Counted from the first letter of the stretch, positions 1 through 30,790 are shown. The stretch: DNA of 64,000 nucleotides from Hyaloraphidium curvatum SAG 235-1 (GCA_025558095.1 JAIVFI010000032.1:310001-374000); one strand, 5' to 3'. A program made the numbers and translations. The notes: generated from the sequence alone by a model not told the origin.

Positions 1-540
1 GTTCCGCGCCGTAACGGAAGCGGCGTGCGGGAGCCAGCGGTCAGAGCGAGTCCCTCAGGCGTTCCGCAATGCCGCGCACACAGAGGTCCGAGAAGCTCGC
101 GAGGGGAGACGTTTCGGAGGCTGCGATGAGCAATCGTGAGCCTCGAATTTATCTCATGGCGGGAATCGGCGGCCCAGACCGTGTGCGGCTCCGAAGCCGC
201 TCCGGGCGGCTTCAAACTCGGACTGCCCCGCTTCCCCGCCATCCCTATGCCACACGCAAACCGCATTATGTGAGCCCGCAACTAGCCGGCGATGTCAGAA
301 ATGTTTCTTCGGTAGCTGCCGCCGGATTAAGAGAGCGAATTCATGCACTCCCAGCCCTAAAGGCGCCGGGAGACGGAATAGACTCTTTTTTTTGGGATCT
401 GGTTGGGATCGGCCGTCGGTGAGCCGTTAGTCATTGCCGCTTGCTGCGGGAGGCAAGGAGTCCCGACTACAAAGCTTCCCGTGTCCGCTCCGCCGCAGCG
501 CACTTTCACCCAGTCTCCCGCACCTCAACGACTCGCAGCA

Positions 541-14249: not shown

Positions 14250-15786
14250 ATGGACGCGAGGGAGCCCGGCGCCGAGGACCGAAAGCCCCTGTTCACGGCG
14301 ACGGAATGGCGCGCCATATTCCCCGCCGAGCCGCGGCAGCCTTGGCGCCTCTCCGGCGCGCCCGCGATCCCCGCCTCCGCCGACGCTGACGGCTCCCCGC
14401 TCTCGCTCGCCGCGATGCTGCGCGCGCTGGCGCCGTACCCGGCCCTCTGCACATCCCTCCGCGTGCAGCGTGCATTCGGCACGTTTTCGCGCGCGTTTCA
14501 TCCCCTCGCGGCAACCGGTCTCGTGCTTGCGCTCGTCGTCGCGTCGCTCCCGTGGGTGTTCAACGACGGGCGCTACGGCGCCGCGCAATTCGGCACGTAC
14601 GCGGCGACGATGGTCGCGGCGTTCTGCGGCAACTTCGCGATAAGTGCCGTCACCTCCCGCCGGCAGGGCCCCGCCGCCGAGAACCCGCTGGACACGCACG
14701 GGTTGGCGCCCGTCGCCAGGTGGCGGATGCTTGTCGATGCCGGCGAGACTGGGCCTGGATCCGCGAATCCCGCGCGCAGTGCATTGGTGGCCCACGATCC
14801 AGACGACCGGGCGTGCCCGTGCGACGGCGGCGGGTGCTGCGGCGCCATCCCAGCCAGGGTCTTGTGGAGCTGGCTGCTCAAGAACCTGGCCACGGCGACT
14901 TTCGCTTTTGTCTGCACCGGCATCTTTATGCTGTGGTCGTCCATCGTCACGTTCGGAGCCCGCACATGGACCACTCCGTGGTCCACTGCCGTGGCTGGCG
15001 CCACGCGTAAGTGGGAACCGCTCAGGCGTGTTCCTGCTAATGCTTTGCCTGCGAGTGATTCTCTTTGCGGTGGGGCAGTACGTGGCCTTCAACTTCAGCA
15101 TGTTCCCCGAAACCATCCCGGGCTTCGAGCTCGTCTCCCGCATCACGGACAGGGCCATCAAGTTGCAGCTCACGGACCTTCTACAGCGGTACCGCGCCGA
15201 GCTTGCTGCCGCGGACGACGCGGACCTCCCGGAGAACCTCTCGCGGCACGAACCGTACACCCGACTCCACCCCTGGGTCGTAGCCGCCGCCTCGGAGCGC
15301 GTGGCCGGCCTGTTCCACTCGCAGGTCTGGCACTCAGTCAGCATCGCGAGCTACGTCGTCTACAATTCCGTCTACATCGCCACCGGCTCCTGCATCACCC
15401 TCGGCTTCCTCCTCGCCTTCCTGTACTCGCTCCTCTCCCTGGTGCACGACCTCGTCGTGGTCGCGGCCGGCAACGCGCACCTCGACTCGGCCGCGGCGCT
15501 GTACCTCGCCGCTCGCACCGAGGCCCTGGAGCTCTCGGCGTCGGCGGCGGCGCGCCCCGGCCCGCGTGCGGGAGTGCTTGCGGCGGCGCTGGCGCGGCAC
15601 GCCGATGTGCTCGGGGCGTATGCGCGCATCGCGGACGTGGGGACGCGGTTCCTCGGGTTCAGGGTGTCGTACGGGGCCGTGAGGACGCTGTGCGTGACGG
15701 GGTTGACGGTCGCGTTCGGCGTCTGGAGCGTGCTCAGGGGGGCGGGTGTGTTTGTGACGGTCGAGTCGGTTTGCCCAAGCGGGTAG
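14250..15786 (+). CDS. 7-TM membrane protein, candidate 7TMIC (Gr-like/DUF3537-like) family, paralog 1
   Basis: Two exons (intron 15007-15055, GTAAGT..GCTAAT..AG). Collinear similarity to 25043-26566, including HD..CPC...C.G, TWTTPWS, LTDLL.RY, EPYT and RFLGF.V.YGAVRT. The CDS is well supported; the family call is inference. Confidence 0.8.
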
Positions 15787-15850
15787 CTCCTCGACGGAGG
15801 CCGGATTGGTACAGAAAGCTGGGAGGCGTTACAGTTCGTCGGAGAGACCG

Positions 15851-16282
15851 TCATGCCGGAACGATCTGCTTCGTGACCCTCACGAGCGCCGCTGCCTCTC
15901 CGCCCTGCCGAGCCTCCACCTCCACGAACGCCAGCGCCCTCCCGGCCCTCCTCACCGTGGCCACCAGCTCCACGTCCTGCCCCGCCCTCATCGGCCTCAA
16001 AAACTGCGCGTGCAGGTCCGCGGTCACCGCGAACGCGTCCCGCGGTATCGTCGGCAAAAGCGCGATCATGGCCGCCGGTTCCGCGAGGAGGGAGACAAGG
16101 CCGCCGTGCACAGTGGTGCCGCTCGGGCCCAGCGCCGGGGGTGTAGCGGGGAACCTGAGGGTCGCGCGACCGGGGGAGACGTGCACGGCTTCGAGGGCGA
16201 AGAGGCGGTGCGCGGGGAGACCGAGCACGTTGGCGATGGTTGATTCGAGTTCGGCGCCGGTGCGCGGTTCGGGGGGCGGCAT
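15851..16282 (-). CDS. PaaI-type hotdog-fold thioesterase
   Basis: GTTVHGGLVSLLAE motif, VTADLHAQFLRP, VRRAGRALAFVEVE; about 143 aa. Confidence 0.88.
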   Translation of the reverse strand: MPPPEPRTGAELESTIANVLGLPAHRLFALEAVHVSPGRATLRFPATPPALGPSGTTVHGGLVSLLAEPAAMIALLPTIPRDAFAVTADLHAQFLRPMRAGQDVELVATVRRAGRALAFVEVEARQGGEAAALVRVTKQIVPA

Positions 16283-16467
16283 CGCGGTCCGGCGCGTTCC
16301 GAGCCGGTCTCGGATAGGTAGAAGCCGCTTTAGGCGTGCTTTCCTCTCGGACAAGGAGCGCGCAGCTTCCGCTTGCGGCTGTTCGAAAGAATGGAGCAAA
16401 GCGCGTCGCGGCGGCAAACGCGCGGCGACACCGTCCACGCGAACCCGCAATCCCCGCCAACACCGCG

Positions 16468-19062
16468 ATGCTCGGCGCGGCGCCCGCCGGCCCCTCGTCG
16501 GGCTCCTCGTCCGGCGCGTCGTCGCCGCCGCCGGCGCGCGATCCCCCCGCGGGGCTCATCTCGTCGGCCGCGACGCTCACCGAGGTCGGCGCCGAATTCC
16601 CGCCGGCCCCCGCCGCCCCTCACCGCGCCCCCCGCAGGGCGTCTCCGTGCGGCTGCCGCCCGGCTTGGCCGCCGCCGCGGGCTCAAAGCGCAAGCGGGGG
16701 CGGGCGTCGTCGCCGCCGCGGCACGCCGGGACGGCCGTCCCCGTCGACTCGCCGGGGTTCCCGCCGCGGGCGGAGCGCAGGTTCAAAGAGCCCGCGGCGC
16801 TGGCGAGGATGAGGGAGGAGAGGTACCGCGCGGCATGGGGCCGCGCTGAGGCCAGGATCAAGGTGAACGAGCCCAACTTCCTTGCCGGCCCACACCTGCT
16901 CACCCCGTGCCACCCGCGTCGCCCCTCTCACACGCGGGAACAGTCCGCACAACACAGCGTGCACGCCGCCGCGCTGGCCCGCATCGCCGCATTCGCGCTC
17001 GACCCGCCCGCCCCCACGCCGACGCCCACGCTGCCCACGCTGCTCGTCGCCACGCGCTCGCCCGCCCCGTCGACCTACGTCCCGCCCGTGCTCGACGAGC
17101 TCAAGGGCCGCGCGCTGTGCGCCGTGCTGTACCCCAAGGACTGCAAGGACACCAAGGCCGCCTTCTCGGCGCTGTCGCGCGGCCTGCGCGAGGCGGCTGC
17201 TGGGTTCCTCGGCGCAGTGCAGGACGGGGGGGAGGACAGCGACGGCGAGGACGACCTGGGCTACTCCCTCGCCGCCGCTCGGCCGGCCCGCGGCAAAGCC
17301 CGCATCCCCGAATGGGACCCCGCGTGGGCCCTGGCCTGGTGGAAGCTCGTCTCTTCCTCCTTCGCGCGCAAGGACCAAATCCCCCCGCCAGTGCTGGTCA
17401 TCCTCCCCTCCCTTCCCAACTTCCCGCAACTCCCCGCGCTGCTCCACGCCCTGCACTCCCTCTCTTCCACCCTCCCCCTCCGGCTGCTCGCGTTCCCGCA
17501 CGGCGCCGACCCCGCGGAGCTCCTCCCGCACCGCTCCCTGGCGCTGCTGGACGTACAGCGCGCGCGTATGCAGGGGGGGACCGAGGCGGTGTGGGGGGGA
17601 TGGCTGGGGGTGCCGCTGGTGGGGCCCAACGGGACCGACGTGCCGATGGACGTGGGATCGTTGGAGGTGGGGGTGGGGAGGAGGGTCATGGCGTTTCTGC
17701 AGCACAGGGCGGCGGATTGGGAGGGCGGGGACGGGCTGCCCATGGGCCTCAAGGTACCTCGCTCGGGACGGATTGGTGCCGCCGATCGGTAGGCTGATTG
17801 CCCCGGTTCGCAGTTCGCGACGATGCAGCACTACTACGAGAACCCGCTCTCGGTGCTCTGCCTACCGCCCGGGTGCGACGCCGACGCCGAGATCGACGCG
17901 ATCGTGTCCGAGATCGAGCGCGCCGGCGCGGTGGACGAGTACGCCGGCCTGCTGGCCGAGCTCGGCAGCGGCTCCCTGTCGCGCTTCCTCGCCGCGGCCG
18001 AGTCCCGCCCCCCCTCGAAGGACTCGGACCTCGCCTGCCTCCTCCGCCTCGCCGCCTCGCTCCCCACGTACCCCCCGCCCCGCGGCCGCAAGACCGACCT
18101 CCGTCCCCTCTTCTCCCCCCTCGTGCTGCACCTCTCGTCCCTCCTCGCGCGCCTGCGCCGCTCCTGGCGCGCCCTCGCGCTGCTCGCGTCGCGGTGCGGC
18201 ATGCGACTGACCGCCGAGGGCTGGCTGATGCTCCTGGAAGGCACGCTGGCGGGGTCGACGTGGTGGAACCGCGCGTGGGGGGAGGTGGGCAAGTGGGACC
18301 GCAAGAACTGGGACGGGATGCTTGCGGATCTGGAGGGGGTGGAGGGGTTCGCCTCCAAGGCCGGGGAGCTCCGCGGGGAGCTGGCCTCGTTCGACGAAGA
18401 AGAGGACCTGCGCCCCCGCGCGGCGGGGTGGGTCGGCACCGCCTCCTCGCGCACCACCTCGCGCTCCCTCCGCGCCCGCGAGGACGAGGAAGCGCGGAAG
18501 GCGGCGCAGGGCGGGATCGAGGGGTGGCGCTGGGGCGCGGGGAGGTGGCTCGAAGGGGAGCTGAGGGAGGGCTTGGCGAGCCCGATGGGGTGGCCTTTCG
18601 GGGAGGTGGTGCTGGTGGATTCGGTGGGCGTCGTGGAGAAGGTTGGTTGCCTTTGCCGCGGAGTGCGTGCATTATCGCGGCTGACGGTGCGTACAGCACT
18701 TTGCGCCCCCGATCAGGGCGTGCCTCCACACGGCCCTCGGCAAGCCCTCGCCGACCTACCTCGCGTGCGCGTGCTGCCCCGACGACCAGCTGCGCGCGAC
18801 CATGGGCGACCCGCAGATCGCCTACCGCCTGCACCTCGAGCACGGGCGCATGGTCAACCTGGCCGACTGGGCGGTGCAGTTCCGCGACGTCGTCAACGGG
18901 TCCGTCGAGCGGAAAGAGGAGGAGGATGGGGGCGAGGAGGCCGAGTGGAGGGCCAAGGAGGTGCACGCGCGGTTCGTGCGGAGCGCGAGCGAGCTGCAGT
19001 TCGTGGGGCTGGTAAAGAGGACCAACAGGCGCAAGGACCACGTGGTCAAGGCGCAGATGTAG
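16468..19062 (+). CDS. ORC3: Origin recognition complex subunit 3
   Basis: After splicing (introns 16585-16637, 16863-16943, 17754-17813, about 18642-18697): R..RY..AW, MQHYYENPLSVL, YLACACC, and a C-terminal winged helix IAYRLHLEHGRMVNLADW...ARFVRSASELQFVGLVKRTNRRKDHV typical of ORC3. Confidence 0.9.
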
Positions 19063-19331
19063 AAGAGGGGGATAGATGCTTGATTCTGGATGCGAGTAAT
19101 GCAAGTTGGCGACCGCAAGGCGAGGATTAACCGACGACACCTGTCCCCGTCGAGTCGGGCGGGATCCTTAGCATCTATCTTTAGATGTCGTACGCAAGTG
19201 ACAAAGCTCTGCCCGGTCAGCGAGTTAGGGGTATGTGGCATGATGGTGCGGTCCTATTCGAAAGTGCAAGCCCAGGAGGAACCAATTGGCGGCGAGTTCG
19301 GAGAAGAAGATATTGGTTCTATAGATTTCCA

Positions 19332-21299
19332 TCACGAAGCCGTTAGAAACAGTATCGCGACGGTAATGACCGGCAGCGCAAATGGAGGGACCGATCCCGC
19401 ACTCCGAGCACCAGAAAGACTTCCCTCGCCCTGGGTATCCGCCGTCGTCCTCGTCGGGCTGGCCACGGTAGCGCCGCTCGAAGTCGGACACTGGGGAACC
19501 GCAGACTGCTCCCCACTGAGCACCCCGAAAGCCCTCGCGCACCAGCCGTCCGCTCGTTCCGGGCAGACCATCCCGCCGCCTTCCGCCGATGGCTTGGGTT
19601 CCCCTGGCGCGAGCATGGCGCACGCCTGATCCGAGTACCACGAGCACCGCTGGGTATCGGGGCCGCGACACTGCGCCACAGGGCCGGCTGCGCGAACCGC
19701 GACGAAGTTGCCCTTATCCGCGCAGGAGCGGATGCAGATCCAGCTCGACGTCGTCGGTGTCGGCGTGACGGGCGCTTGCGTAGTGGAGGTGCCTTGCCCC
19801 TGCACGATCGTCGCTGCGGCTGCCTGCGACCTAGCTTTGGTCGACATCTCGGTGGTGGTTGACTGGTCGTTGGCATAGTCCCAGTCTGGATGCTCGGAAA
19901 AGCTCCGCAGCAACCTCGCGCACCAGGCCTCCGTACATGGGCAGACGCAGGCGGTACCACCGGCCAGCTCCGTTGGGCTGCACACCGCACCGCCCGAGCC
20001 GTCCTCTCGAGCGGGGGCCGCCCGCCCGCATCCGCGCGCATCCGCCCTCCGGCAAACGAACGGCCATGCCACCTGAATGGTACAGTTCCCGTCCTTATAC
20101 GACCAGCAATTTCCAGCATCAGGCCCGCGGCATTGCAGCGTGTTGCGGCCGTCGGCATCCACGAGCCGCCCCTTAACGTACCCGTCACAGATCACATTGT
20201 GCAGGCAGTGCCAGTCCGAGCGCGGTGACACGGTGCGCACCGGGCCGGGGGTCGTGGTGGTAGCCGTGCGCGTTGGCGTCATTGGGCTCGCGATCCCGGG
20301 GCATTCGTAGTTCGGCGCGATCCCGCGGAGGACGGCGTCCGCGGCGAGCTTGCACCACCCTAATTCCGTCTGCTTGCAGGTGAAACCCGCGGCGCGGTCG
20401 CCGTAGGTGTTTGGCTCAGGCTCGCCAGGGGCGAGGGTGGACAGACTCATCTCCGTGTACCAGGAGCACCGCGAGCCCTCCCAATCCGGCCCGTGGCACA
20501 TCACCCCGAATCCGGCGCGCCTGACCCGGAGGTAGTTGCCCTTGTCCTCACACGAGCGGATCGCGATCCAGGGCCCGAAGAATGTATCGTTGCTCGATGT
20601 CTCCGTCACATCCGGGCACGCGTCCGGTTTCTTGGGGTAGAGCAGGTCAGAAACAACTGAACTACTTGCCTCCCCACAGAAGCTGTAATCTTCTTTCCAC
20701 TCGTAGCCGTAGTGTGCTTCATTGACGTTGACACTCTTGCCGTTGCAAAGGGCACCGCCGCCAGCGACCGGATCCCCGTTCTGAGCCTGGGTGCAGAAGG
20801 GATCCGAGAACAAGCTACATTCCCCATCAGACGGGCCGGTGCACCGCACGTGAAGCGGGTATTCTCCGCCGCTGCTGTATTTCGAGGCATCACTCCTGAA
20901 CCCTGCCCGGATCCACAGGCAACCCAGCGATGGAGCCCGGACACACGAGCCGTCGCCGTTGTACTTGCCGCACGCAAAACCCCACTGCGAGCGGGCGGCC
21001 AGGCGGCGCCGGCCGTAGTTGGCGAACGGGCCGCCGTCGCACCACCCGACGCACTGCGAGGCCAAACCGGGGCTCTCTGTCCGGCAGACCAGGAATCCCG
21101 TGGCGGGGTCCACGACCTCCTTTGTCAGAACATAGCCGGAGCTGGTGGCGCCTGCCTGCGCCGGGAGGTCGAGCATCGCGGCGAGCAGGGTGCCCGCGGT
21201 GACCACGGCGCCCGCTGCGCGGCACAGGGCGGTGGCCCGGGACCGGTGCCGCTGGGATCGCTTCGGAGAGGTGTCCTTCGGGTTTCTCTTGCAGTCCAT
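19332..21299 (-). CDS. Secreted, probably GPI-anchored Cys-rich repeat protein
   Basis: Hydrophobic leader ending PAQAG; four copies of a module with C.GP[DS]...C..[YF]; Thr-rich linkers; hydrophobic C-terminus PFALPVITVAILFLTAS. Confidence 0.82.
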   Translation of the reverse strand: MDCKRNPKDTSPKRSQRHRSRATALCRAAGAVVTAGTLLAAMLDLPAQAGATSSGYVLTKEVVDPATGFLVCRTESPGLASQCVGWCDGGPFANYGRRRLAARSQWGFACGKYNGDGSCVRAPSLGCLWIRAGFRSDASKYSSGGEYPLHVRCTGPSDGECSLFSDPFCTQAQNGDPVAGGGALCNGKSVNVNEAHYGYEWKEDYSFCGEASSSVVSDLLYPKKPDACPDVTETSSNDTFFGPWIAIRSCEDKGNYLRVRRAGFGVMCHGPDWEGSRCSWYTEMSLSTLAPGEPEPNTYGDRAAGFTCKQTELGWCKLAADAVLRGIAPNYECPGIASPMTPTRTATTTTPGPVRTVSPRSDWHCLHNVICDGYVKGRLVDADGRNTLQCRGPDAGNCWSYKDGNCTIQVAWPFVCRRADARGCGRAAPAREDGSGGAVCSPTELAGGTACVCPCTEAWCARLLRSFSEHPDWDYANDQSTTTEMSTKARSQAAAATIVQGQGTSTTQAPVTPTPTTSSWICIRSCADKGNFVAVRAAGPVAQCRGPDTQRCSWYSDQACAMLAPGEPKPSAEGGGMVCPERADGWCARAFGVLSGEQSAVPQCPTSSGATVASPTRTTADTQGEGSLSGARSAGSVPPFALPVITVAILFLTAS

Positions 21300-21724
21300 T
21301 GTTCGTTCGTGAAAATGTGTTTGCGGAATGTCTTTGGTCCGTAGTCATCCGTGTGGAGTCAGATCTCTTAGGGTGCGCTGTTCCAGCGTACGCGGACGAG
21401 CGGCGACTGCACGATCTCTATCACAGGCGCTGAGCGCCCCCCAACCCCGATACATCACGCCATACACATTGAATTCGGGGAAGAGGGGAGGGGTTAGATG
21501 GTGTGGAGTCATCCTTCCGTCGGTGGCGGAGCCTCCTTGCCATCCCAAGCATCCCAATAGCATGTGAAAGGGACAGCGGCCCCTTTCACGCTCCGGCCTG
21601 CTGCCCAGGAGCCCCGGAGAGGAGGATGAAGGCACGATCGCGCGCAGGGGCGCGATCGGAGGGGAGGAGGAGGATAGTTAGATTGTCACATGTATTGTCG
21701 CCAGTCATCGCCGCGCCCAGCAAG

Positions 21725-22324
21725 ATGCGACTGCCTTCGCTTCTCGTTCTGCTCCTCGCCGCGGCCCTCGTCGCGCTCGCCGCGCGCCCGGGTGCGGCCG
21801 CCCCTATCCCGACATCCTGCACCGCCAGCTACTATCGGAACTGCACGACCGGGTGCTGTTTCCAGGGAGCGTGCGCGCCGCACTCGGTCTGCTTCGGAAA
21901 CATAGCGCAACTACAATGCACTGCCAGCTCGTACACCCAGTGCGACTCGGGTTGCTGCTTCAACGGCCGGTGCTCGAAGAAGCGCAGCTGCTTCCCCGAC
22001 CCCGTCGACACTCCACTAGGCTCGTGCAACGCTTCGTTCGATCTTGGCCAGTGTCGCACCGCTTGCTGCGTCGACGGGCGCTGCCGCTCGCTCGGCCGCT
22101 GCCTCGGCCCCGGGCGCGCACCCAAGGCGTCACCATCCAAGCTCCGCTCCCGGCAGGAGACATCCTGCCCTCCGGATTATGCGTTGCTCTGCGGAGAGTG
22201 CGCGGCGCTGGCGGGCAACCCCGCGCTCTGCGGCAGCCTGGACGCGCTGACGGCCGCGATGCGCAACGAGCTCGCCGACGAAGGGGACATGCCGCAAGGG
22301 AAGACCGCCGTCTTGCCCGAGTAG
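21725..22324 (+). CDS. Small secreted protein with three C-C-CC-C-C (knottin-like) repeats
   Basis: Signal peptide MRLPSLLVLLLAAALVALAARPGAAA followed by three repeats of C-x7/8-C-x3-CC-x4-C-x5-C. Confidence 0.85.
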   Translation: MRLPSLLVLLLAAALVALAARPGAAAPIPTSCTASYYRNCTTGCCFQGACAPHSVCFGNIAQLQCTASSYTQCDSGCCFNGRCSKKRSCFPDPVDTPLGSCNASFDLGQCRTACCVDGRCRSLGRCLGPGRAPKASPSKLRSRQETSCPPDYALLCGECAALAGNPALCGSLDALTAAMRNELADEGDMPQGKTAVLPE

Positions 22325-22593
22325 CCCCGCGGCTGGAGTTGCCCGAGTTCGGATCAAAGGACGTCTCGAATGGGAGGGGCCGCGTCAACTGTTGTGACTC
22401 AAAACGTTGTGATTTATGCCGCAGTTATCTTTACAATCTTTAGATGTCGTGCGCCGGCGAGTTAGGGTAGGTGATTCCGATAGCGCGATGGTGGCCGCGC
22501 GGCCGGAGCGGGAGCCGTGGACTTCCGTGGCGCCGTCCCGTCCAATGCATAAACACCGCCGCCGAATCGGCGGTTCGCCACAGAGTCCCGGCG

Positions 22594-23547
22594 ATGGCAT
22601 CCCCAGAAGTGCAGGCCACCAAAGACCCGAGCGTGTGGGCCATCGACTGGCTTTCAACGCCTGCCGGCGCCATCCGCCTCGGCCGCGCCCGCACGGCGTT
22701 CCGCGGCCCCTCAACCCCGACCGTGCTCATAATCCCCGGCCGCGGCGACTCCCTCGAGCTGCGCGCCTGGGTTGCCGCCCGGCTAGCGCGAATGGGCGCC
22801 GACGTGGTCATGGCCGAGCACCTCGGCCAGGGCGGATCCCGGGCGCTTGGCAGGCACCCCGGCGCCGTGCACGTCGGCTCCTTTTCGCAGCACCTTGATG
22901 CCGTGGAGGCCGTGCTTGAAGGGATTAACGGTCCGGCGTACCTGCTCGCGCATTCGATGGGAGGGCTTCTTGCCGCGCACCTTCTCGCGAGGCACCCCGA
23001 CAGGTTCGCCGGTGCCGTGCTCACGTCGCCAATGTGGCGGTTTGCCGGAGTGCCGACGTGGCTGGCCGCTGCGTTGGCGAAGGTGGCCTTGTTGTTCGGC
23101 TGGGGAGATGAGTTCGCGCTCGGGGAAGGCCCTTTCTCGCTGCAGGCCTGCACGCAGATGCGCACCTCGGGCAAGACTGACAGGGACCAGCTCGTCGCCC
23201 TCGCCGCTTTCGCTACCGCCTATCCGGAGCTCGTGAGGGGCGGATCGACCTGGGGATGGACCGCCGCTGCCGCGGAGTACATGACCGCTCTCGGATCCCT
23301 GGACCTGGGAGCGGTCCGCTGCCCCGTGCTGGTCTTCAAGTGCGCCGAAGATGCCACGGTGGACCTCGGCATCATGGATGCGGTCGCGGCCAAGTTCGCG
23401 AGGGGCACCTGCCTGGCGCTCCCGGGCGGACACGACCCTTTCTTTGGCAACCGCTCAGTGAGGGAGGAGCTTTGGGCTGCGATCGAAAAGACCTTCTCTC
23501 TGCCAGTCAAGAACTACGACGCCTCGATGCCGATTCTTCGCCTGTAA
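22594..23547 (+). CDS. Alpha/beta hydrolase, lysophospholipase L2 (PldB)/monoglyceride lipase-like, intronless
   Basis: VLIIPGRGD, EHLGQGGS, nucleophile elbow AHSMGG, Asp in AEDATV, His in GGHD. Confidence 0.88.
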   Translation: MASPEVQATKDPSVWAIDWLSTPAGAIRLGRARTAFRGPSTPTVLIIPGRGDSLELRAWVAARLARMGADVVMAEHLGQGGSRALGRHPGAVHVGSFSQHLDAVEAVLEGINGPAYLLAHSMGGLLAAHLLARHPDRFAGAVLTSPMWRFAGVPTWLAAALAKVALLFGWGDEFALGEGPFSLQACTQMRTSGKTDRDQLVALAAFATAYPELVRGGSTWGWTAAAAEYMTALGSLDLGAVRCPVLVFKCAEDATVDLGIMDAVAAKFARGTCLALPGGHDPFFGNRSVREELWAAIEKTFSLPVKNYDASMPILRL

Positions 23548-23930
23548 TAGTGCTGCGGATGCAGACATACGCGTTCGGACTTCGGCTTGCCAACCCTGGC
23601 CAGTTTGGACGAGGCCAACGGCGGCTAGGACGACGGTGCAGATCAGCCAATCTTTGGCATTTAAATTGCTTCCGTAGTCTTATGTAAGAGCTTGGGCGGA
23701 ATTCAAGTGAGGTGACGTCTCCAGAAGCCCAGCGCAACGGCACCTCTCCAAACCGCTCTCGTAAGGCGAATCCCGGCAGGAGATTTTGCGGAGCTCTGGA
23801 TCAAGAAAAGGGCCCGCGACTGTTCCCTCTTGTGATCGTTGCGGGGGTTCGGGGGCCACCGATCCGCGTGCGCACGGATTCCGTGTTGTGTCGACCCGCG
23901 TCGATTTCACCGCTCCCCCGCAAACACACG

Positions 23931-24563
23931 ATGAGGCTCGCGATTTTCGGCGGCACCGGCAAGACCGGCCGCCTCGTTGTCGAGCGCGCGCTCGCCGCCG
24001 GCCACGAGGTCCGCATGCTGGCGCGGTCGCCGGACAAGGTCGCGCTGAAGGACCCCAGGCTCACTGTCGTCGCGGGCCAACTGTCGGACTGGGAGCGCGT
24101 TGCCGAGACCGTCCGCGGGACCGACGTCGTGATTTCCGCGCTGGGGCCCACGCACAACAAGCCGACGTTCGACGTGTCGGCCGGGATGGCCAACATTGTA
24201 GCGGCTATGAAGCAGGAAGGCGTCAAGCGGATCGTGGCCACTGCGGGGGCCGGCGTGCCGGATCCCGGCGACAAGCCGGGCTGGATGGACGCGGTGGTCG
24301 TGTTCATGCTCAAGCGGCTGCAGGGCAACCTTCTGGCGGACGTCACCAAGGCCGTCGAGATCCTGCGCGGCTCGGGGCTGGACTACACCGTCCTGCGGGC
24401 GCCCATGCTGACGGACGACGCCCCTACGGGCTCGGTGCGCCTCGGCGCGGTCGGAAAGGACATTGGCGTCAAGCTAACGAGGGGCGATTTTGCGGCCGAG
24501 CTCTTCAAGCAGGCCGTAGAGAAGTCGAGCTGGATCGGGAAGGCACCCGGCATTTCGAATTAG
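23931..24563 (+). CDS. NAD(P)H-binding atypical SDR, flavin reductase/biliverdin reductase B-like, intronless
   Basis: MRLAIFGGTGKTG, DVVISALG, GVKRIV, SGLDYTVLRAPML, LTRGDFA; 210 aa. Confidence 0.92.
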   Translation: MRLAIFGGTGKTGRLVVERALAAGHEVRMLARSPDKVALKDPRLTVVAGQLSDWERVAETVRGTDVVISALGPTHNKPTFDVSAGMANIVAAMKQEGVKRIVATAGAGVPDPGDKPGWMDAVVVFMLKRLQGNLLADVTKAVEILRGSGLDYTVLRAPMLTDDAPTGSVRLGAVGKDIGVKLTRGDFAAELFKQAVEKSSWIGKAPGISN

Positions 24564-25042
24564 TGGATCAGCAGAAGGAGATATCGAGGCCGTGCCTATA
24601 GAACCGTTGTATGGGCACATTTCGAGGAACATGGAAGAGACGATAGCGCAGACATCAATCTGGCAACTTCAGTCGACGAGAGTTCGCTAGGTTCAGTCGC
24701 GCTAGGATGAAGGTCGTAGGATCCGCCTCCTGATGGGACATGCGGATGCGGTCTATTGGCCGTAACACCGAGGGTCCTGCCCCGCGGGAGAAACGTCGTG
24801 AACCCCGAGGAGCTCATTCGCGTAAACGCCTCAGCGTCAACCATCTGGGTCACGTGTAGGGCGGCAAAGGCAATAACAACCGCAGGAGATGTCGGATCCA
24901 AATGATTGCTCGGCGATTACTTGGACGAGCGGCGACTGCAGGATTCCACGTGGGCCGTCCCAGGCGGCGCGCTCGATCGCGACCACGCACTCCATGCGTT
25001 CGAACCGTCGCACTGTCGGGGCCCGCTGGACGCGTTCTTCCG

Positions 25043-26566
25043 ATGGACGAGGGGCACAAGGAGGAGCCCGGCGGGCCTCCCGCGGGCCCCACCGCGGCCG
25101 ACTGGATGGCGGTCCTCCCTCTGCCGCCGGCGCCCCCGCAGAAGCGCTTCGCGCGGCCGTCCCCCGCGGACCCGGCGGCGGCCCTGCGCGCCGAGCGGCC
25201 CCTCACGCTCGAGACGCTCCTCGCGGATCTGCGCCGCTTCAGCTCCTCGCTGGCGCTGGCCGTCCGGATACAGCTTCTCATAGGCCCCTGGGCACGTCGC
25301 GTAGTCCTACGCGCGATGGTGGGCACGGTGCTTGCCGGTGCCCTGTCTGCGGTTCCGTTCGTGTTTGGCGGAGGCGCGGTGTTCGCCCTGCCTCAAATGG
25401 TGGTCGGCACTGTCGCGCTGAACCTTTTCGCCCTCGCAATGTGGGGGATAACGGCCCTGGCAGTGTACCGCGCCGCCTTCGCGGCGGCATCGGGCGCCCC
25501 TGCCGCATCTGCTCCCAGGGACTTCTCCGCCCTCGGTGTAGCCGGGCTTGCTCGCTGGATTGAGGCACTTGGCCCCTCCAATCAGCCTTCGGTGCTGCTC
25601 GAGCATGACGCGAAGGACCCGCCAGGCATGTGTCCCTGCGCAGAGCCATCCTGCTCCGGAAAGCTCCCAGCCCGCGCGGCCGCGCTGCGCTGGCTCGAGA
25701 TTGTCTCCAAAACCGCCCTACTTCTGGTGTTTCAGACTTTCGTCCTCTGGACGCCGCTAGCATCGCCCGTCTACGCTGCAACAACCTGGACCACACCGTG
25801 GAGCATTGTTCTTGGCTGCCTCGCCGTGCTAGGGGCGCTCAGCTTCTCCATCCCGATCTCCCTCGGACGGTTCACGACGAACCTTGCGCTCCTACAGCTT
25901 GCACACCGCGTGGACCGCCGCGCCGTCCAGCTCGCATTGACCGACCTGCTTGACCGCTACCACGCCGCCGCAACCGGCACGGCACCGTGGCATCCGCGCG
26001 CGCCCGAGCCCTATACCACCACGCACGCGCTGCTTCTTTCGGCGTGGAACCGGCGCCTTTCGACCTTCAATTCCTCCGTCTCTTTCATCTTTGGCCTCGC
26101 CGCGGCTGCCATCGCGGCCGCGGCCAACGCCATCGCCGGCGGGTGCATCCCCGCCGTCTACATCGCCTACTGGGCCTACGCCGGCGTGATCAACCTCTTT
26201 GACCTCGTCAACGTCGCCGCCGCCAACGCCCAAGTCTCGGACATTGGCGAGCTCTACGCCGACGCCGCGCGGGAGCTCGCAGAGACGCACCGCGACGCCG
26301 CCGCGGCAGGGGCAGCTGCGGACACCTCCCCGGCGCGGACCGCGGCCGACCCCGCGCTGCTGGTCGCCATGCGCGCCGATGCCGCCGTTCTGGCGACGTA
26401 CGAGGATGTGGACAGGTTCAGGACGAGGTTCCTGGGCTTCGTGGTGACCTACGGCGCGGTTAGGACGATCGTGGTGACCGCCGTGACCCTGGCGGTGGCG
26501 CTCTACTCCGTAGTCCGCGGTCTGGGCGTTTTCGTCACATTGGAGACCATGTGTCCGACGAGGTAG
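25043..26566 (+). CDS. 7-TM membrane protein, candidate 7TMIC (Gr-like/DUF3537-like) family, paralog 2 (intronless)
   Basis: Seven hydrophobic segments; end-to-end similarity with 14250-15786. The CDS is well supported; the family call is inference. Confidence 0.82.
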   Translation: MDEGHKEEPGGPPAGPTAADWMAVLPLPPAPPQKRFARPSPADPAAALRAERPLTLETLLADLRRFSSSLALAVRIQLLIGPWARRVVLRAMVGTVLAGALSAVPFVFGGGAVFALPQMVVGTVALNLFALAMWGITALAVYRAAFAAASGAPAASAPRDFSALGVAGLARWIEALGPSNQPSVLLEHDAKDPPGMCPCAEPSCSGKLPARAAALRWLEIVSKTALLLVFQTFVLWTPLASPVYAATTWTTPWSIVLGCLAVLGALSFSIPISLGRFTTNLALLQLAHRVDRRAVQLALTDLLDRYHAAATGTAPWHPRAPEPYTTTHALLLSAWNRRLSTFNSSVSFIFGLAAAAIAAAANAIAGGCIPAVYIAYWAYAGVINLFDLVNVAAANAQVSDIGELYADAARELAETHRDAAAAGAAADTSPARTAADPALLVAMRADAAVLATYEDVDRFRTRFLGFVVTYGAVRTIVVTAVTLAVALYSVVRGLGVFVTLETMCPTR

Positions 26567-27949: not shown

Positions 27950-30790
27950 ATGGCCAAGCCTCCTGCGCCGGACCCGCGGCATTCGCACGGGTCCGACGCG
28001 TCGGAAGCTGTGCCGAACGGCGGCGCGTCCGGCGGCGCGGCGGCGGACGACGGTGCGCGGCGGCGTCGCAATGCCGACCCCTCGCGGGGCCCGTCTTCCC
28101 GCGTCGATTTCCGGTTCTCGGCGGACTCGGCGGACCTGGGCGACGCGGATCTGCCGGCGGCCGACGAGCCGCTGCCGCGCTACGAGTCGGGGTTCCTCCC
28201 GGCGATGGCGCTCGGCGTCGACGCGGACGCCGCGCGCGCCGCGCTGCTCGCCTCGCCGCCGCCGGCCGCCGTCGTGTCGCCCGAGCTGTACGCCGAGCAG
28301 CCGCGCGGGCTGGCGCCGAACCGCTACCCGACGATCGACTGGGTGCGCGACGGCATGCTCGACCGCAGGAGGCGCCGCGCAGAGTTCGTCGCCGCGCGCA
28401 CGTCGGTGGCGCCGACGCTCTCCGCGTGGGCAATCGGCGCTGCGGACGCCGCCCGCCCGTGGGCAGCAGCGACCCTGGCCGGCCTGATGACCGGCCTGCT
28501 CGCCGCCTCGGTCGCCGTCTTCACGGCGTTCCTGGTCGACGTCAAGACCGGCGTGTGCCGCGCGCTCATCTCGGACGGCCGCAAGGGCTGGTACCTCCCC
28601 AAGCGCGCGTGCTGCCTCGGCGCCGTCGACGCCGACGCAGGCGACTGCCCCGAATGGCAGCCGTGGTCGGAGCTCCTCGGCGTGCCGGGCTCGTACCTCG
28701 CGGACTACGGCGCCTTCACCGCCTTTTCGGTCCTCTTTGCCATGGTCTCCTGCCTGTGCGTCGTCACCTTGGCGCCGTGGGCCGGGGGCGAGGGCATCCC
28801 GGAACTCAAGACGGTGCTCGGCGGCAACCGCATCCCCGGCCTGCTCTCTCCGACCACGCTGCTCGTCAAGGCCGCCGGCCTGCCGCTGGCCATCGGGTCG
28901 GGGCTTTCGGTCGGCAAGGAGGGCGCGCTGATCCACGTCGCAGCCTGCCTCGGCGGCCTCGCGCTGCGCCTGGTGGGCGGCGCGAGCTCCGAGAGCCGCA
29001 ACCGCGAGATGCTCTCGAGCGCGGCCGCGGCGGGGATCGCCGTGGCTTTCGGCGCCCCCATCGGCGGCGTCCTTTTCTCCCTCGAGGAGGTATCGACGTT
29101 CTTCCCGCTCAAGACCGTCTGGCGGAGCATGCTCTGCGCCATGGTCGCCGCCGTGACGATGCAGATCATGGACCCGTACCGCGGGAAGCGCGTCGTTTTC
29201 GAGGTGCTCGGCCAGGGCGAGGCGGACTGGAAAATGTTTGAGCTCCCCGCCTTTATCGTGCTCGGCGCCATCGGCGCCGCCTACGGCGGCTTCTTCATCA
29301 GCGTCAACATGAAGGTGCAAGCCTGGCGCGAATGGCTCTACGCCCCCGCCCCCGCACCGCCGCAGCGCGATCCCCGCGCCCCCGCCCCCCCACCGCGCTC
29401 CCCCTTCCTCACCCCCCTCCTCGACGCCTTTGCCCTCGCCCTCCTCACCGCCGTGCTCTTCTACCCCTCACCCCTCACCCGCCTCGACGACCTCCGCGTG
29501 CTCGAGCTGCTCTTCCGGGACTGCCCCGAGCCCGGCTCCACCCTCGCCCCCGCGGACCCGCTCTGCCCCGCCGGCCCCGTCGCCCGCACCAAGCTCTTTG
29601 TCGTGCTCGCGCTCACCGCCTCCCTCAAGACCTTCCTGACCGCCGCCACCTACTCCCTCCCCGTGCCCTCGTCGGTGTTCATCCCCGGGATGGCCGTCGG
29701 CGCGCTGCTCGGCCGCGCGGTGGGGATGCTGGTGCAGGGGTCGGCGGCGGGCGGGGGCGCGTGGTTCGGCGAGTGCCGGCTCAAGCCGGACGAGGAGTGC
29801 GTGGGTCTGGGACGGTACGCCCTGCTGGGCGCGGTGGGGGCGCTGGGCGGGATCACCAGGTTGACGGGTGGGTACCGCGCGCGCCGCGGACGTCCCGCCC
29901 TTCCCTGACCTGACCGCGTGCATGCCGCAGTCTCGCTCGTGGTCATCATGTTCGAGCTCACGGGCCAGCTCTCCCTCGTCGTGCCCTCCATGGTCTGCCT
30001 CGTCTCGGCGCGCATCGCCTCGGACCTCATGGGCATCCGCCGCGGCTTCGCGGACGAGTGCATCCGCGCAAAGGGGTACCCGTACCTGGACCCCAACGAC
30101 GACAGGGCGCCGCAGGGGGAGGTGCGGGACTGCATGACGCCGCTGGAGGAGCTGGTGACGCTGCCGGCGCGGGGGGAGCCGGCGGAGAGGGTCGGGGAGA
30201 AGATGGGGAGGGGGTACCACGGGTTCCCCGTGGCGGACGGGGAGCTGATGGCCGGGTGGGTGCAGGCGGCGGACGTCAGGAGGGTGCTGGACGGGCTGCA
30301 GCTCGCCCCCGGGGCGTGGGTGAGGTTCGACGGGCGGGGCAGGACGAACGGGAGGAGGGTGTGGGTCGGCGGGGCGCCGGTCTACGTGGAGGAGGAGGCG
30401 GGGGACGGGGAGGCGATCGAGATGGTGGGGGATGCGGGGGTGGGGAGGGTGCGGGCCGCGGACCTGGCGAGCATCGTCGATCCCGCGCCCATCACGCTGA
30501 ATCCGCACCTGCCCGCGGCGGTGGCGGTGGACCTGTTCCGCAAGGTCGGTCCGCGGTGCGTGGTGGTCACGCGCAGGGGGAGGCTGAGGGGAGTGCTGAC
30601 CAAGAAGGACCTGCTGGTGGTCCTGGACTCGATGGATGCGGAACCGGAAGCCGAGGAGGGGATGGACGAGGAGGAGAGGGAGATTGCGGGGACGGTCGGA
30701 GGCGAGGAGCGGTCGTGGTGGGAGAGGCTGACGGGGCAAGGTGTGGGAGCGGACGAGATACCGCTTGTACGAGGCGGGCGCGGGGAGTGA
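27950..30790 (+). CDS. CLC family anion channel/antiporter (ClC-3/Gef1-like) with CBS domains
   Basis: YPTIDW, GEGIPELK, GKEGA, FGAPIGGVLFSLEE, VFIP, RLTVSLVVIMFELTG (joined across intron 29868-29930), GYPYLD, C-terminal CBS pair ending GVLTKKDLL. Confidence 0.93.

Follow-up and report, generated by a model that had tools for sequence, protein, structure and literature searches.

What kind of membrane protein is encoded by two related genes, here called A and B, in a 64,000-nucleotide stretch (the window; contig 32, positions 310001-374000, in a 31.9-Mb assembly of 55 contigs) of the genome of Hyaloraphidium curvatum SAG 235-1? A reading made from the sequence on its own had taken them for divergent members of the seven-transmembrane ion channel (7TMIC) superfamily and for part of a lineage-expanded fungal family of candidate chemoreceptors. 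This superfamily unites the odorant receptors (ORs) of insects and their gustatory receptors (GRs), animal gustatory receptor-like proteins (GRLs), plant DUF3537 proteins and PHTF. H. curvatum is indeed a chytrid-grade fungus (Monoblepharidomycetes), and "lineage-expanded" proved to be an understatement, as the family that includes A and B has about 400 members. The earlier observation is confirmed, and its interpretation is well supported with respect to fold and topology.

Gene structure and membrane topology

Gene A occupies 14250-15786 and encodes ~495 amino acids (aa), with a change of frame near position 15000. An intron is predicted at 15007-15055, because the splice signals are canonical and removal of this segment restores both the reading frame and the family register; in the spliced gene, TWTTPWS and RA[IV]xLxLTDLL are separated by 38 residues, exactly the spacing of gene B. 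Gene A was compared exon by exon, as two separate rows, and BLASTP aligned exon 1 with residues 40-257 of gene B (E 1e-14, 30% identity) and exon 2 with residues 262-506 (E 3e-31, 33% identity), so that the two proteins are collinear over their full length at ~30-35% identity overall. Both exon rows are in register in the family alignment and carry all family-invariant residues. The end-to-end correspondence and all of the motifs listed by the sequence-only reading were recovered in A and B.

Hydropathy, counts of lysine plus arginine (K+R) and loop lengths were taken from an alignment of 49 members in gene B numbering, which applies throughout. The seven hydropathy segments coincide with helices of both AlphaFold2 models described below, in agreement with the seven hydrophobic segments recognized earlier, and the N-terminus is hydrophilic. 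K+R totals per sequence are ~32 inside versus ~1.4 outside, and this positive-inside count indicates a clear orientation with the N-terminus inside (N-in) and the C-terminus outside, the reverse of G-protein-coupled receptors (GPCRs). The third extracellular loop (EL3), between transmembrane helices (TM) 5 and 6, has 4 residues in all 49 members, and the first intracellular loop (IL1) has 58-96 residues (median 73) and exceeds the outer loops.

Predicted fold and structural matches

The AlphaFold2 model of gene B built with this alignment (m7c38aaf20a71) reached a predicted local distance difference test (pLDDT) score of 92.5 and a predicted TM-score (pTM) of 0.91, and a second model, of a paralogue ~30% identical (pLDDT 89.6), repeated its features. 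In the gene B model, according to DSSP, TM4 (252-274) is prolonged into the cytoplasm by a helix of 31 residues (281-311), a 19-residue helix (323-341) precedes TM5 (344-366), TM6 is a single 55-residue helix (371-425), and the last helix is split into TM7a (437-459) and TM7b (470-493) by a non-helical hinge with the invariant G465. The long helical TM4-TM5 loop, the very short TM5-TM6 loop and the long TM6 had all been anticipated. Models, hydropathy and the positive-inside count together show several of the structural features by which the 7TMIC superfamily is recognized (Benton & Himmel 2023; Himmel et al. 2023), namely seven TM helices, an intracellular N-terminus, intracellular loops (ILs) longer than extracellular loops (ELs), TM4-6 that project far into the cytoplasm and a split TM7.

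Comparison with known receptor structures had been proposed as a check, and Foldseek searches of the PDB placed insect ORs and GRs at the top for both models (probability up to 0.93 and 1.00), although the E-values were weak (0.03-1) and the TM-scores to PDB chains remained below 0.5. Cryo-electron microscopy structures of insect OR, Orco and GR (6C70, 7LIC, 8V00, 8V3D, 8VC1, 8JM9 and 8JME) were the only full-length PDB matches; all of these representatives outranked all other folds for both models, with >300 residues aligned in each case, and the remaining matches (syntaxin, MukF and designed helical proteins) were confined to 80-190 residues within the cytoplasmic helical bundle. A shape search of the ESM-Atlas returned unnamed cnidarian, arthropod and echinoderm clusters (TM-score 0.55/0.68 over 351 residues). 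A transporter or GPCR fold, named beforehand as the outcome contrary to the proposal, was looked for among the full-length structural matches and none was found. Readings of the family as GPCR or transporter were rejected, given that the full-length structural matches included no GPCR, rhodopsin, PAQR or transporter and that the topology is N-in.

Sequence-level searches

A sequence-level link to any 7TMIC family is lacking across the Pfam, PDB-profile and genome hidden Markov model (HMM) searches. Pfam hmmscan of A, B and the 49 members gave no match, and the family profile run against PDB sequences retrieved no OR or GR and only a chance match to VMA21 (E 0.45). A six-frame search of the genome with Pfam 7tm_7 (PF08395), 7tm_6 (PF02949) and DUF3537 (PF12056) at E <= 10 also returned nothing, with the control genomes likewise matching none, so that this search was without a positive control. 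A word-index search of proteins, started from gene B and from the alignment of 49 members, brought only gene B back and was uninformative, alanine-rich words having probably swamped the candidates. The TYxxxxxQF (TYhhhhhQF) motif of Gr TM7 is absent from the family alignment, and the caveat that the sequence-only reading had attached to this absence holds: the TM7b consensus is RTxxVTxxTxxVGLWSxLRG, without QF, and a preceding TY is confined to some members, with tyrosine at position 470 in 16 of the 49. As both this motif and a Pfam match are missing, membership of the superfamily has to be argued from fold and topology only.

A language-model search, which uses sequence only, gave as neighbours clusters of DUF3537 (7 hits >=0.9), DUF267/SRR, 7tm_7, Trehalose_recp and GUR-5. 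DUF3537 was the nearest named family (0.91, 183 of 256 shared features, 7 of 30 hits), and a single Tmp39 cluster was the only outlier. The Tmp39 reading was rejected, with one language-model hit only and no such full-length fold match.

These results bear on whether the likeness to insect receptors could be convergence or modelling bias, the family being an unrelated new set of seven-helix proteins that shares the topology and the long cytoplasmic helices. The failure to find a 7TMIC family with similar sequences or profiles and the low TM-scores to PDB chains would fit such an origin, and Orco was in the PDB when AlphaFold2 was trained. Neither bias nor convergence, however, readily accounts for the consistent precedence of OR, Orco and GR representatives over other folds for two models that are ~30% identical, for the lack of any full-length GPCR, rhodopsin, PAQR or transporter match, for an independent sequence-embedding search that indicates the same superfamily, or for a conservation pattern and a split TM7 that agree with 7TMICs, and we regard this explanation as improbable. 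The 7TMIC fold itself is well supported by the models. As to the proposal that A and B are 7TMIC homologues, layout and fold stand on models, topology and embeddings, whereas proof at the sequence level was not obtained, and homology with the superfamily is rated as probable.

Family size and distribution

A six-frame genome search with gene B yielded at least 90 scored matches (760 first-look candidates), mostly full-length and stop-free, with a stop inside 6 of the 90; the same search with exon 2 of gene A gave at least 124 matches (124 of 150 scored; 545 first-look candidates). The back-translated motif D-x2-C-P-C-x4-C was counted 257 times across the genome, versus 4 times for the reversed control; 34 of the 49 paralogues in the alignment and 70 of the 122 full-length representatives (57-69%) have exactly its spacing, from which ~370-450 genes are estimated. 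No second counting motif was usable, as one carried by >=70% of members needs >35 pattern places and shorter ones are too rare or unspecific. An exhaustive profile HMM search of 1.84 billion cluster representatives matched 472 (E <= 1e-3), 425 (E <= 1e-10) or 303 (E <= 1e-30) of them, depending on the threshold. Among 30 sampled representatives, 29 are H. curvatum proteins labelled at NCBI as "hypothetical protein DFJ74DRAFT_...". We conclude that the family comprises roughly 400 genes in H. curvatum, the sampled members being annotated as "hypothetical protein".

The remaining sampled representative is environmental and lies on metagenome contigs of 2.9-3.8 kb with 54% guanine plus cytosine (GC). 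Its closest H. curvatum member shares 54% identity with it; it adjoins an SNF2-related gene, and its contig showed no DNA match to the present genome; at least one other, uncultured organism therefore carries the family. A search from this homologue did not find metagenome relatives.

Almost every contig holds family copies, and these frequently cluster (e.g., at 784-817 kb on contig 5 and at 711-715 kb on contig 12). So high a copy number over nearly all contigs might be expected of mobile-element cargo or a recently amplified selfish family, but pairwise identity among 115 full-length representatives has a median of 27%, with a nearest-neighbour median of 38%, which marks the family as old and diversified instead of freshly amplified. 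Flanking and terminal repeats were sought around A and B and none were found, the neighbours include ordinary enzymes and other proteins (GMC oxidoreductase, thioesterase, alpha/beta-hydrolase, NmrA-like, START), and the reading frames are mostly intact, which together make a mobile or selfish origin extremely unlikely.

Two side observations concern duplication and gene structure within the family. On contig 10, two family copies on opposite strands, 4 kb apart, share an identical 33-nt motif sequence at 808992-809024 (+) and 813173-813205 (-), which suggests a recent inverted duplication. The closest relatives of gene A (59-63% identity; C42:24460-24900, C1:1383127-1383555, C12:713185-713610 and ~15 other loci) match only from residue ~105 of exon 2, in open frames of ~140 aa, suggesting from the sequence a subfamily with an extra intron near that residue.

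Conservation and family-specific features

TM7b shows the strongest conservation of all segments (mean majority fraction 0.61, versus 0.32-0.43 for TM1-6), which places the conservation maximum in the split last helix, as the sequence-only reading had it, and matches the pattern described for 7TMICs (10.1101/2023.08.30.555482). The hinge and the 4-residue TM5-TM6 loop come next, and TM1-TM6 are highly variable, with a median pairwise identity of 27-30%. One face of TM7b bears a stripe of small and hydroxyl residues (T475, T479, T482, G486, S489 and G493) flanked by R474 (48 of 49 members) and R492 (44 R, 5 K). Across 115 representatives, the columns conserved at >=93% are P26, H188, D192, C197, C199, C204, R293, C368, N395, G465, R474, T482 and C504.

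Five of these columns form H-x3-D-x2(4)-C-x-C-x4-C in the cytoplasmic IL1, directly before TM3, in a stretch without regular secondary structure modelled at pLDDT 93-97. With one histidine and three cysteines in a reducing compartment, this motif is most likely a knuckle for Zn or another metal. On the outer side, C368 (EL3) and C504 (C-tail) constitute an invariant pair, and strands 368-370 and 497-499 are paired in both models; given this shared location and the paired short strands, the two cysteines probably form an extracellular disulfide. To our knowledge, neither the IL1 Cys/His motif nor the EL3/C-tail cysteine pair has a counterpart in insect receptors.

Possible function

The explanation that we consider best, with modest confidence, is that the ~400 genes of 7TMIC fold encode an array of ligand-gated channels for environmental chemicals. 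By analogy with insect receptors, four subunits would assemble through an "anchor" formed by TM4-6 and TM7a. TM7b would line the central pore, with the small/hydroxyl stripe T475-G493 flanked by R474 and R492, and the variable TM1-6 bundle would bind ligands, so that the repertoire as a whole could sense environmental chemicals. Both channel and chemosensory function are plausible.

Several points weigh against this reading, in addition to the weak structural scores, the training history of AlphaFold2 and the missing sequence-level link reported above. H. curvatum is a non-flagellate, non-motile unicell; in TM2, TM4 and TM5, variability is lower in the outer half than in the inner half; the densest invariant residues (H188, D192, C197, C199 and C204) are cytoplasmic and not in an outer pocket; and the conserved arginines at both ends of TM7b are unlike insect cation pores. 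The first three points also favour a 7TMIC fold with a role other than chemosensation, the proteins acting as channels or scaffolds inside the cell's own economy, such as in ion homeostasis at an organelle or the plasma membrane, in the sensing of metals or redox state by the Cys/His loop, or in the recognition of self or of other cells, with the expansion caused by some other diversifying pressure; for most non-insect 7TMICs, a chemosensory role has not been demonstrated (PMC9998090). Hundreds of members with ~27% median identity, local clusters and a few pseudogenes are, however, typical of a receptor repertoire, and ~400 divergent copies would be needless for a housekeeping role, for which reasons we consider the non-chemosensory alternative rather unlikely, although the most serious competitor of the chemical-sensing array.

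In its strongest form, which we advance only tentatively, the chemical-sensing reading holds that ~400 functional 7TMIC ligand-gated channels constitute a chemical-sensing array and that these bear, on the cytoplasmic side, a novel regulatory loop that binds metal (His/Cys3) and is absent from insect receptors, a repertoire of ant-like size and far above that of any known non-animal species. If true, large repertoires of the odorant-receptor type arose independently in fungi and animals, and massive expansion of this receptor fold would, if confirmed, not be an animal invention. Confirmation would also provide a microbial test system for ligand gating in non-animal 7TMICs, in a culturable organism whose family genes are mostly intronless, and would add two new modules to the superfamily, the IL1 Cys/His loop and the disulfide-tethered C-tail. 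In the literature searched, known non-animal sets number ~1-12 genes, and this one would be by far the largest such repertoire known outside animals. Structure and embedding searches can place an estimated ~2-3% of a fungal proteome now labelled "hypothetical protein". With its scale of ~400 genes, its added modules and its lack of relatives at the sequence level, the family is a good experimental target.

Genomic setting

A and B are neither mutual closest relatives, the best paralogues of B (45-49% identity) being on other contigs, nor a tandem pair, since about six unrelated genes lie between them. The genes between and around them encode a GMC oxidoreductase, a 4HBT thioesterase, an alpha/beta-hydrolase, an NmrA-like NAD(P)-binding protein, a START-domain protein and two cysteine-rich proteins. 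The first cysteine-rich open reading frame (ORF; 19332-21299, minus strand, 655 aa) has a hydrophobic C-terminal tail, no Pfam match and two or more internal repeats with the pattern IRSC-DKGN...C-GPD...CSWY...LAPGEP-P, and may be a secreted or surface protein with a new repeat type. The second (21503-22324, plus strand, 273 aa), also without a Pfam match, has a signal-like hydrophobic segment and three copies of C-x-AS-x-Y-x2-C-x2-GCC-x-G-x-C. Judged by their sequences, both neighbours appear to be secreted. A further family copy is located on contig 32 at 375526-376152 (minus strand), ~1.5 kb past the right end of the window, and additional copies on this contig are found at 23.5, 38.3, 42.7 and 536 kb. 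GC reaches up to 73.5% in window positions 16001-18000 and 28001-30000, where very long ORFs overlap in several frames on both strands; we take these as a composition artefact of a GC-rich genome and not as genes.

Table 1. Coordinates of genes A and B, their motifs, the family topology and the environmental homologue (nucleotides: window positions; residues: gene B numbering)
Feature	Position	Strand	Description
Gene A exon 1	14250..15006	+	N-terminal region, TM1-TM3 and first part of TM4; ATG at 14250
Gene A intron (predicted)	15007..15055	+	49 nt, phase 1; GTAAGT donor at 15007, CTAAT branch site, AG acceptor
Gene A exon 2	15056..15786	+	Remaining TM4 through TM7b, C-tail; TAG stop 15784-15786
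Gene A IL1 motif	14793..14837	+	H-x3-D-x2-C-P-C-x4-C (HDPDDRACPCDGGGC); columns invariant across family
Gene B coding sequence	25043-26566	+	Single exon, one ORF, 507 aa; P0001 in protein searches
Gene B IL1 motif	25604..25654	+	H188-C204; the H, the D and all three C are invariant; putative metal-binding knuckle
Gene B TM7a, hinge, TM7b, C-tail	26351..26563	+	TM7a (437-459), hinge with invariant G465, TM7b (470-493), extracellular C-tail with invariant C504; DSSP of model; lowest-entropy region in family
TM1	87-108		Family-mean hydropathy
TM2	116-140		Family-mean hydropathy
TM3	213-234		Family-mean hydropathy
TM4	250-274		Family-mean hydropathy
TM5	344-366		Family-mean hydropathy
TM6	371-393		Family-mean hydropathy
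TM7b	470-493		Family-mean hydropathy
Inner side: N-terminus, IL1, IL2, IL3			K+R per sequence 7.3, 6.9, 9.8, 8.3; median length of IL1-3 73, 73, 67
Outer side: EL1, EL2, EL3, C-tail			K+R per sequence 0.5, 0.3, 0.0, 0.6; median length of EL1-3 6, 13, 4
Environmental homologue	L053 237-1208; L054 263-1126		JGI 3300043314 and 3300050339, ENA ERZ28593542

Comparison with known systems

In the literature searched, no paper ties Hyaloraphidium to gustatory-receptor or 7TMIC proteins. The PHTF IL1 is far longer than the 58-96 residues of the present family. Among fungi, Himmel et al. 2023 (10.1101/2023.08.30.555482) mention Chytridiomycota and Blastocladiomycota only, and they describe a long IL1 (TM2-TM3) as characteristic of the PHTF-like Class-B 7TMICs. 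Compared by description with that class, the family has an IL1 of only ~73 residues with a Cys/His motif of its own and no Pfam PHTF match. One GRL was found in each of two Spizellomyces species (SpunGRL1 and SpalGRL1; Benton et al. 2020, PMC7746228); together with unspecified chytrid and blastoclad hits, these make up the fungal 7TMICs in the literature searched. The family resembles these chytrid GRLs as candidate 7TMICs of chytrid-grade fungi that show the same topology and a weakly conserved TM7 motif; as far as their description allows comparison, the GRLs differ in being single-copy and in having been found by GRL similarity, whereas the family has ~400 copies to which the 7tm_7 and DUF3537 profiles are blind. 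Plant DUF3537 (PF12056) is the nearest named family by language-model features, yet its HMM gives no match; plant DUF3537 families have 4-12 members (PMC7746228).

With regard to insect OR, Orco and GR, the family differs in sequence (6-12% identity in structural alignments, no HMM match, no TYxxxxxQF) and in carrying an N-terminal extension of ~55 residues, a 73-residue IL1 with His/Asp/Cys3, a 13-residue EL2, the invariant cysteine pair of EL3 and the C-tail, and arginine at both ends of TM7b. It resembles them in having seven TM helices oriented N-in, inner loops that are long and outer ones that are short, TM4-6 prolonged into the cytoplasm, a split TM7 with the highest conservation in TM7b, a length of ~400-500 aa and a large, divergent repertoire, as well as a pair of N-terminal helices before TM1, at the place where insect chains have the re-entrant TM0.

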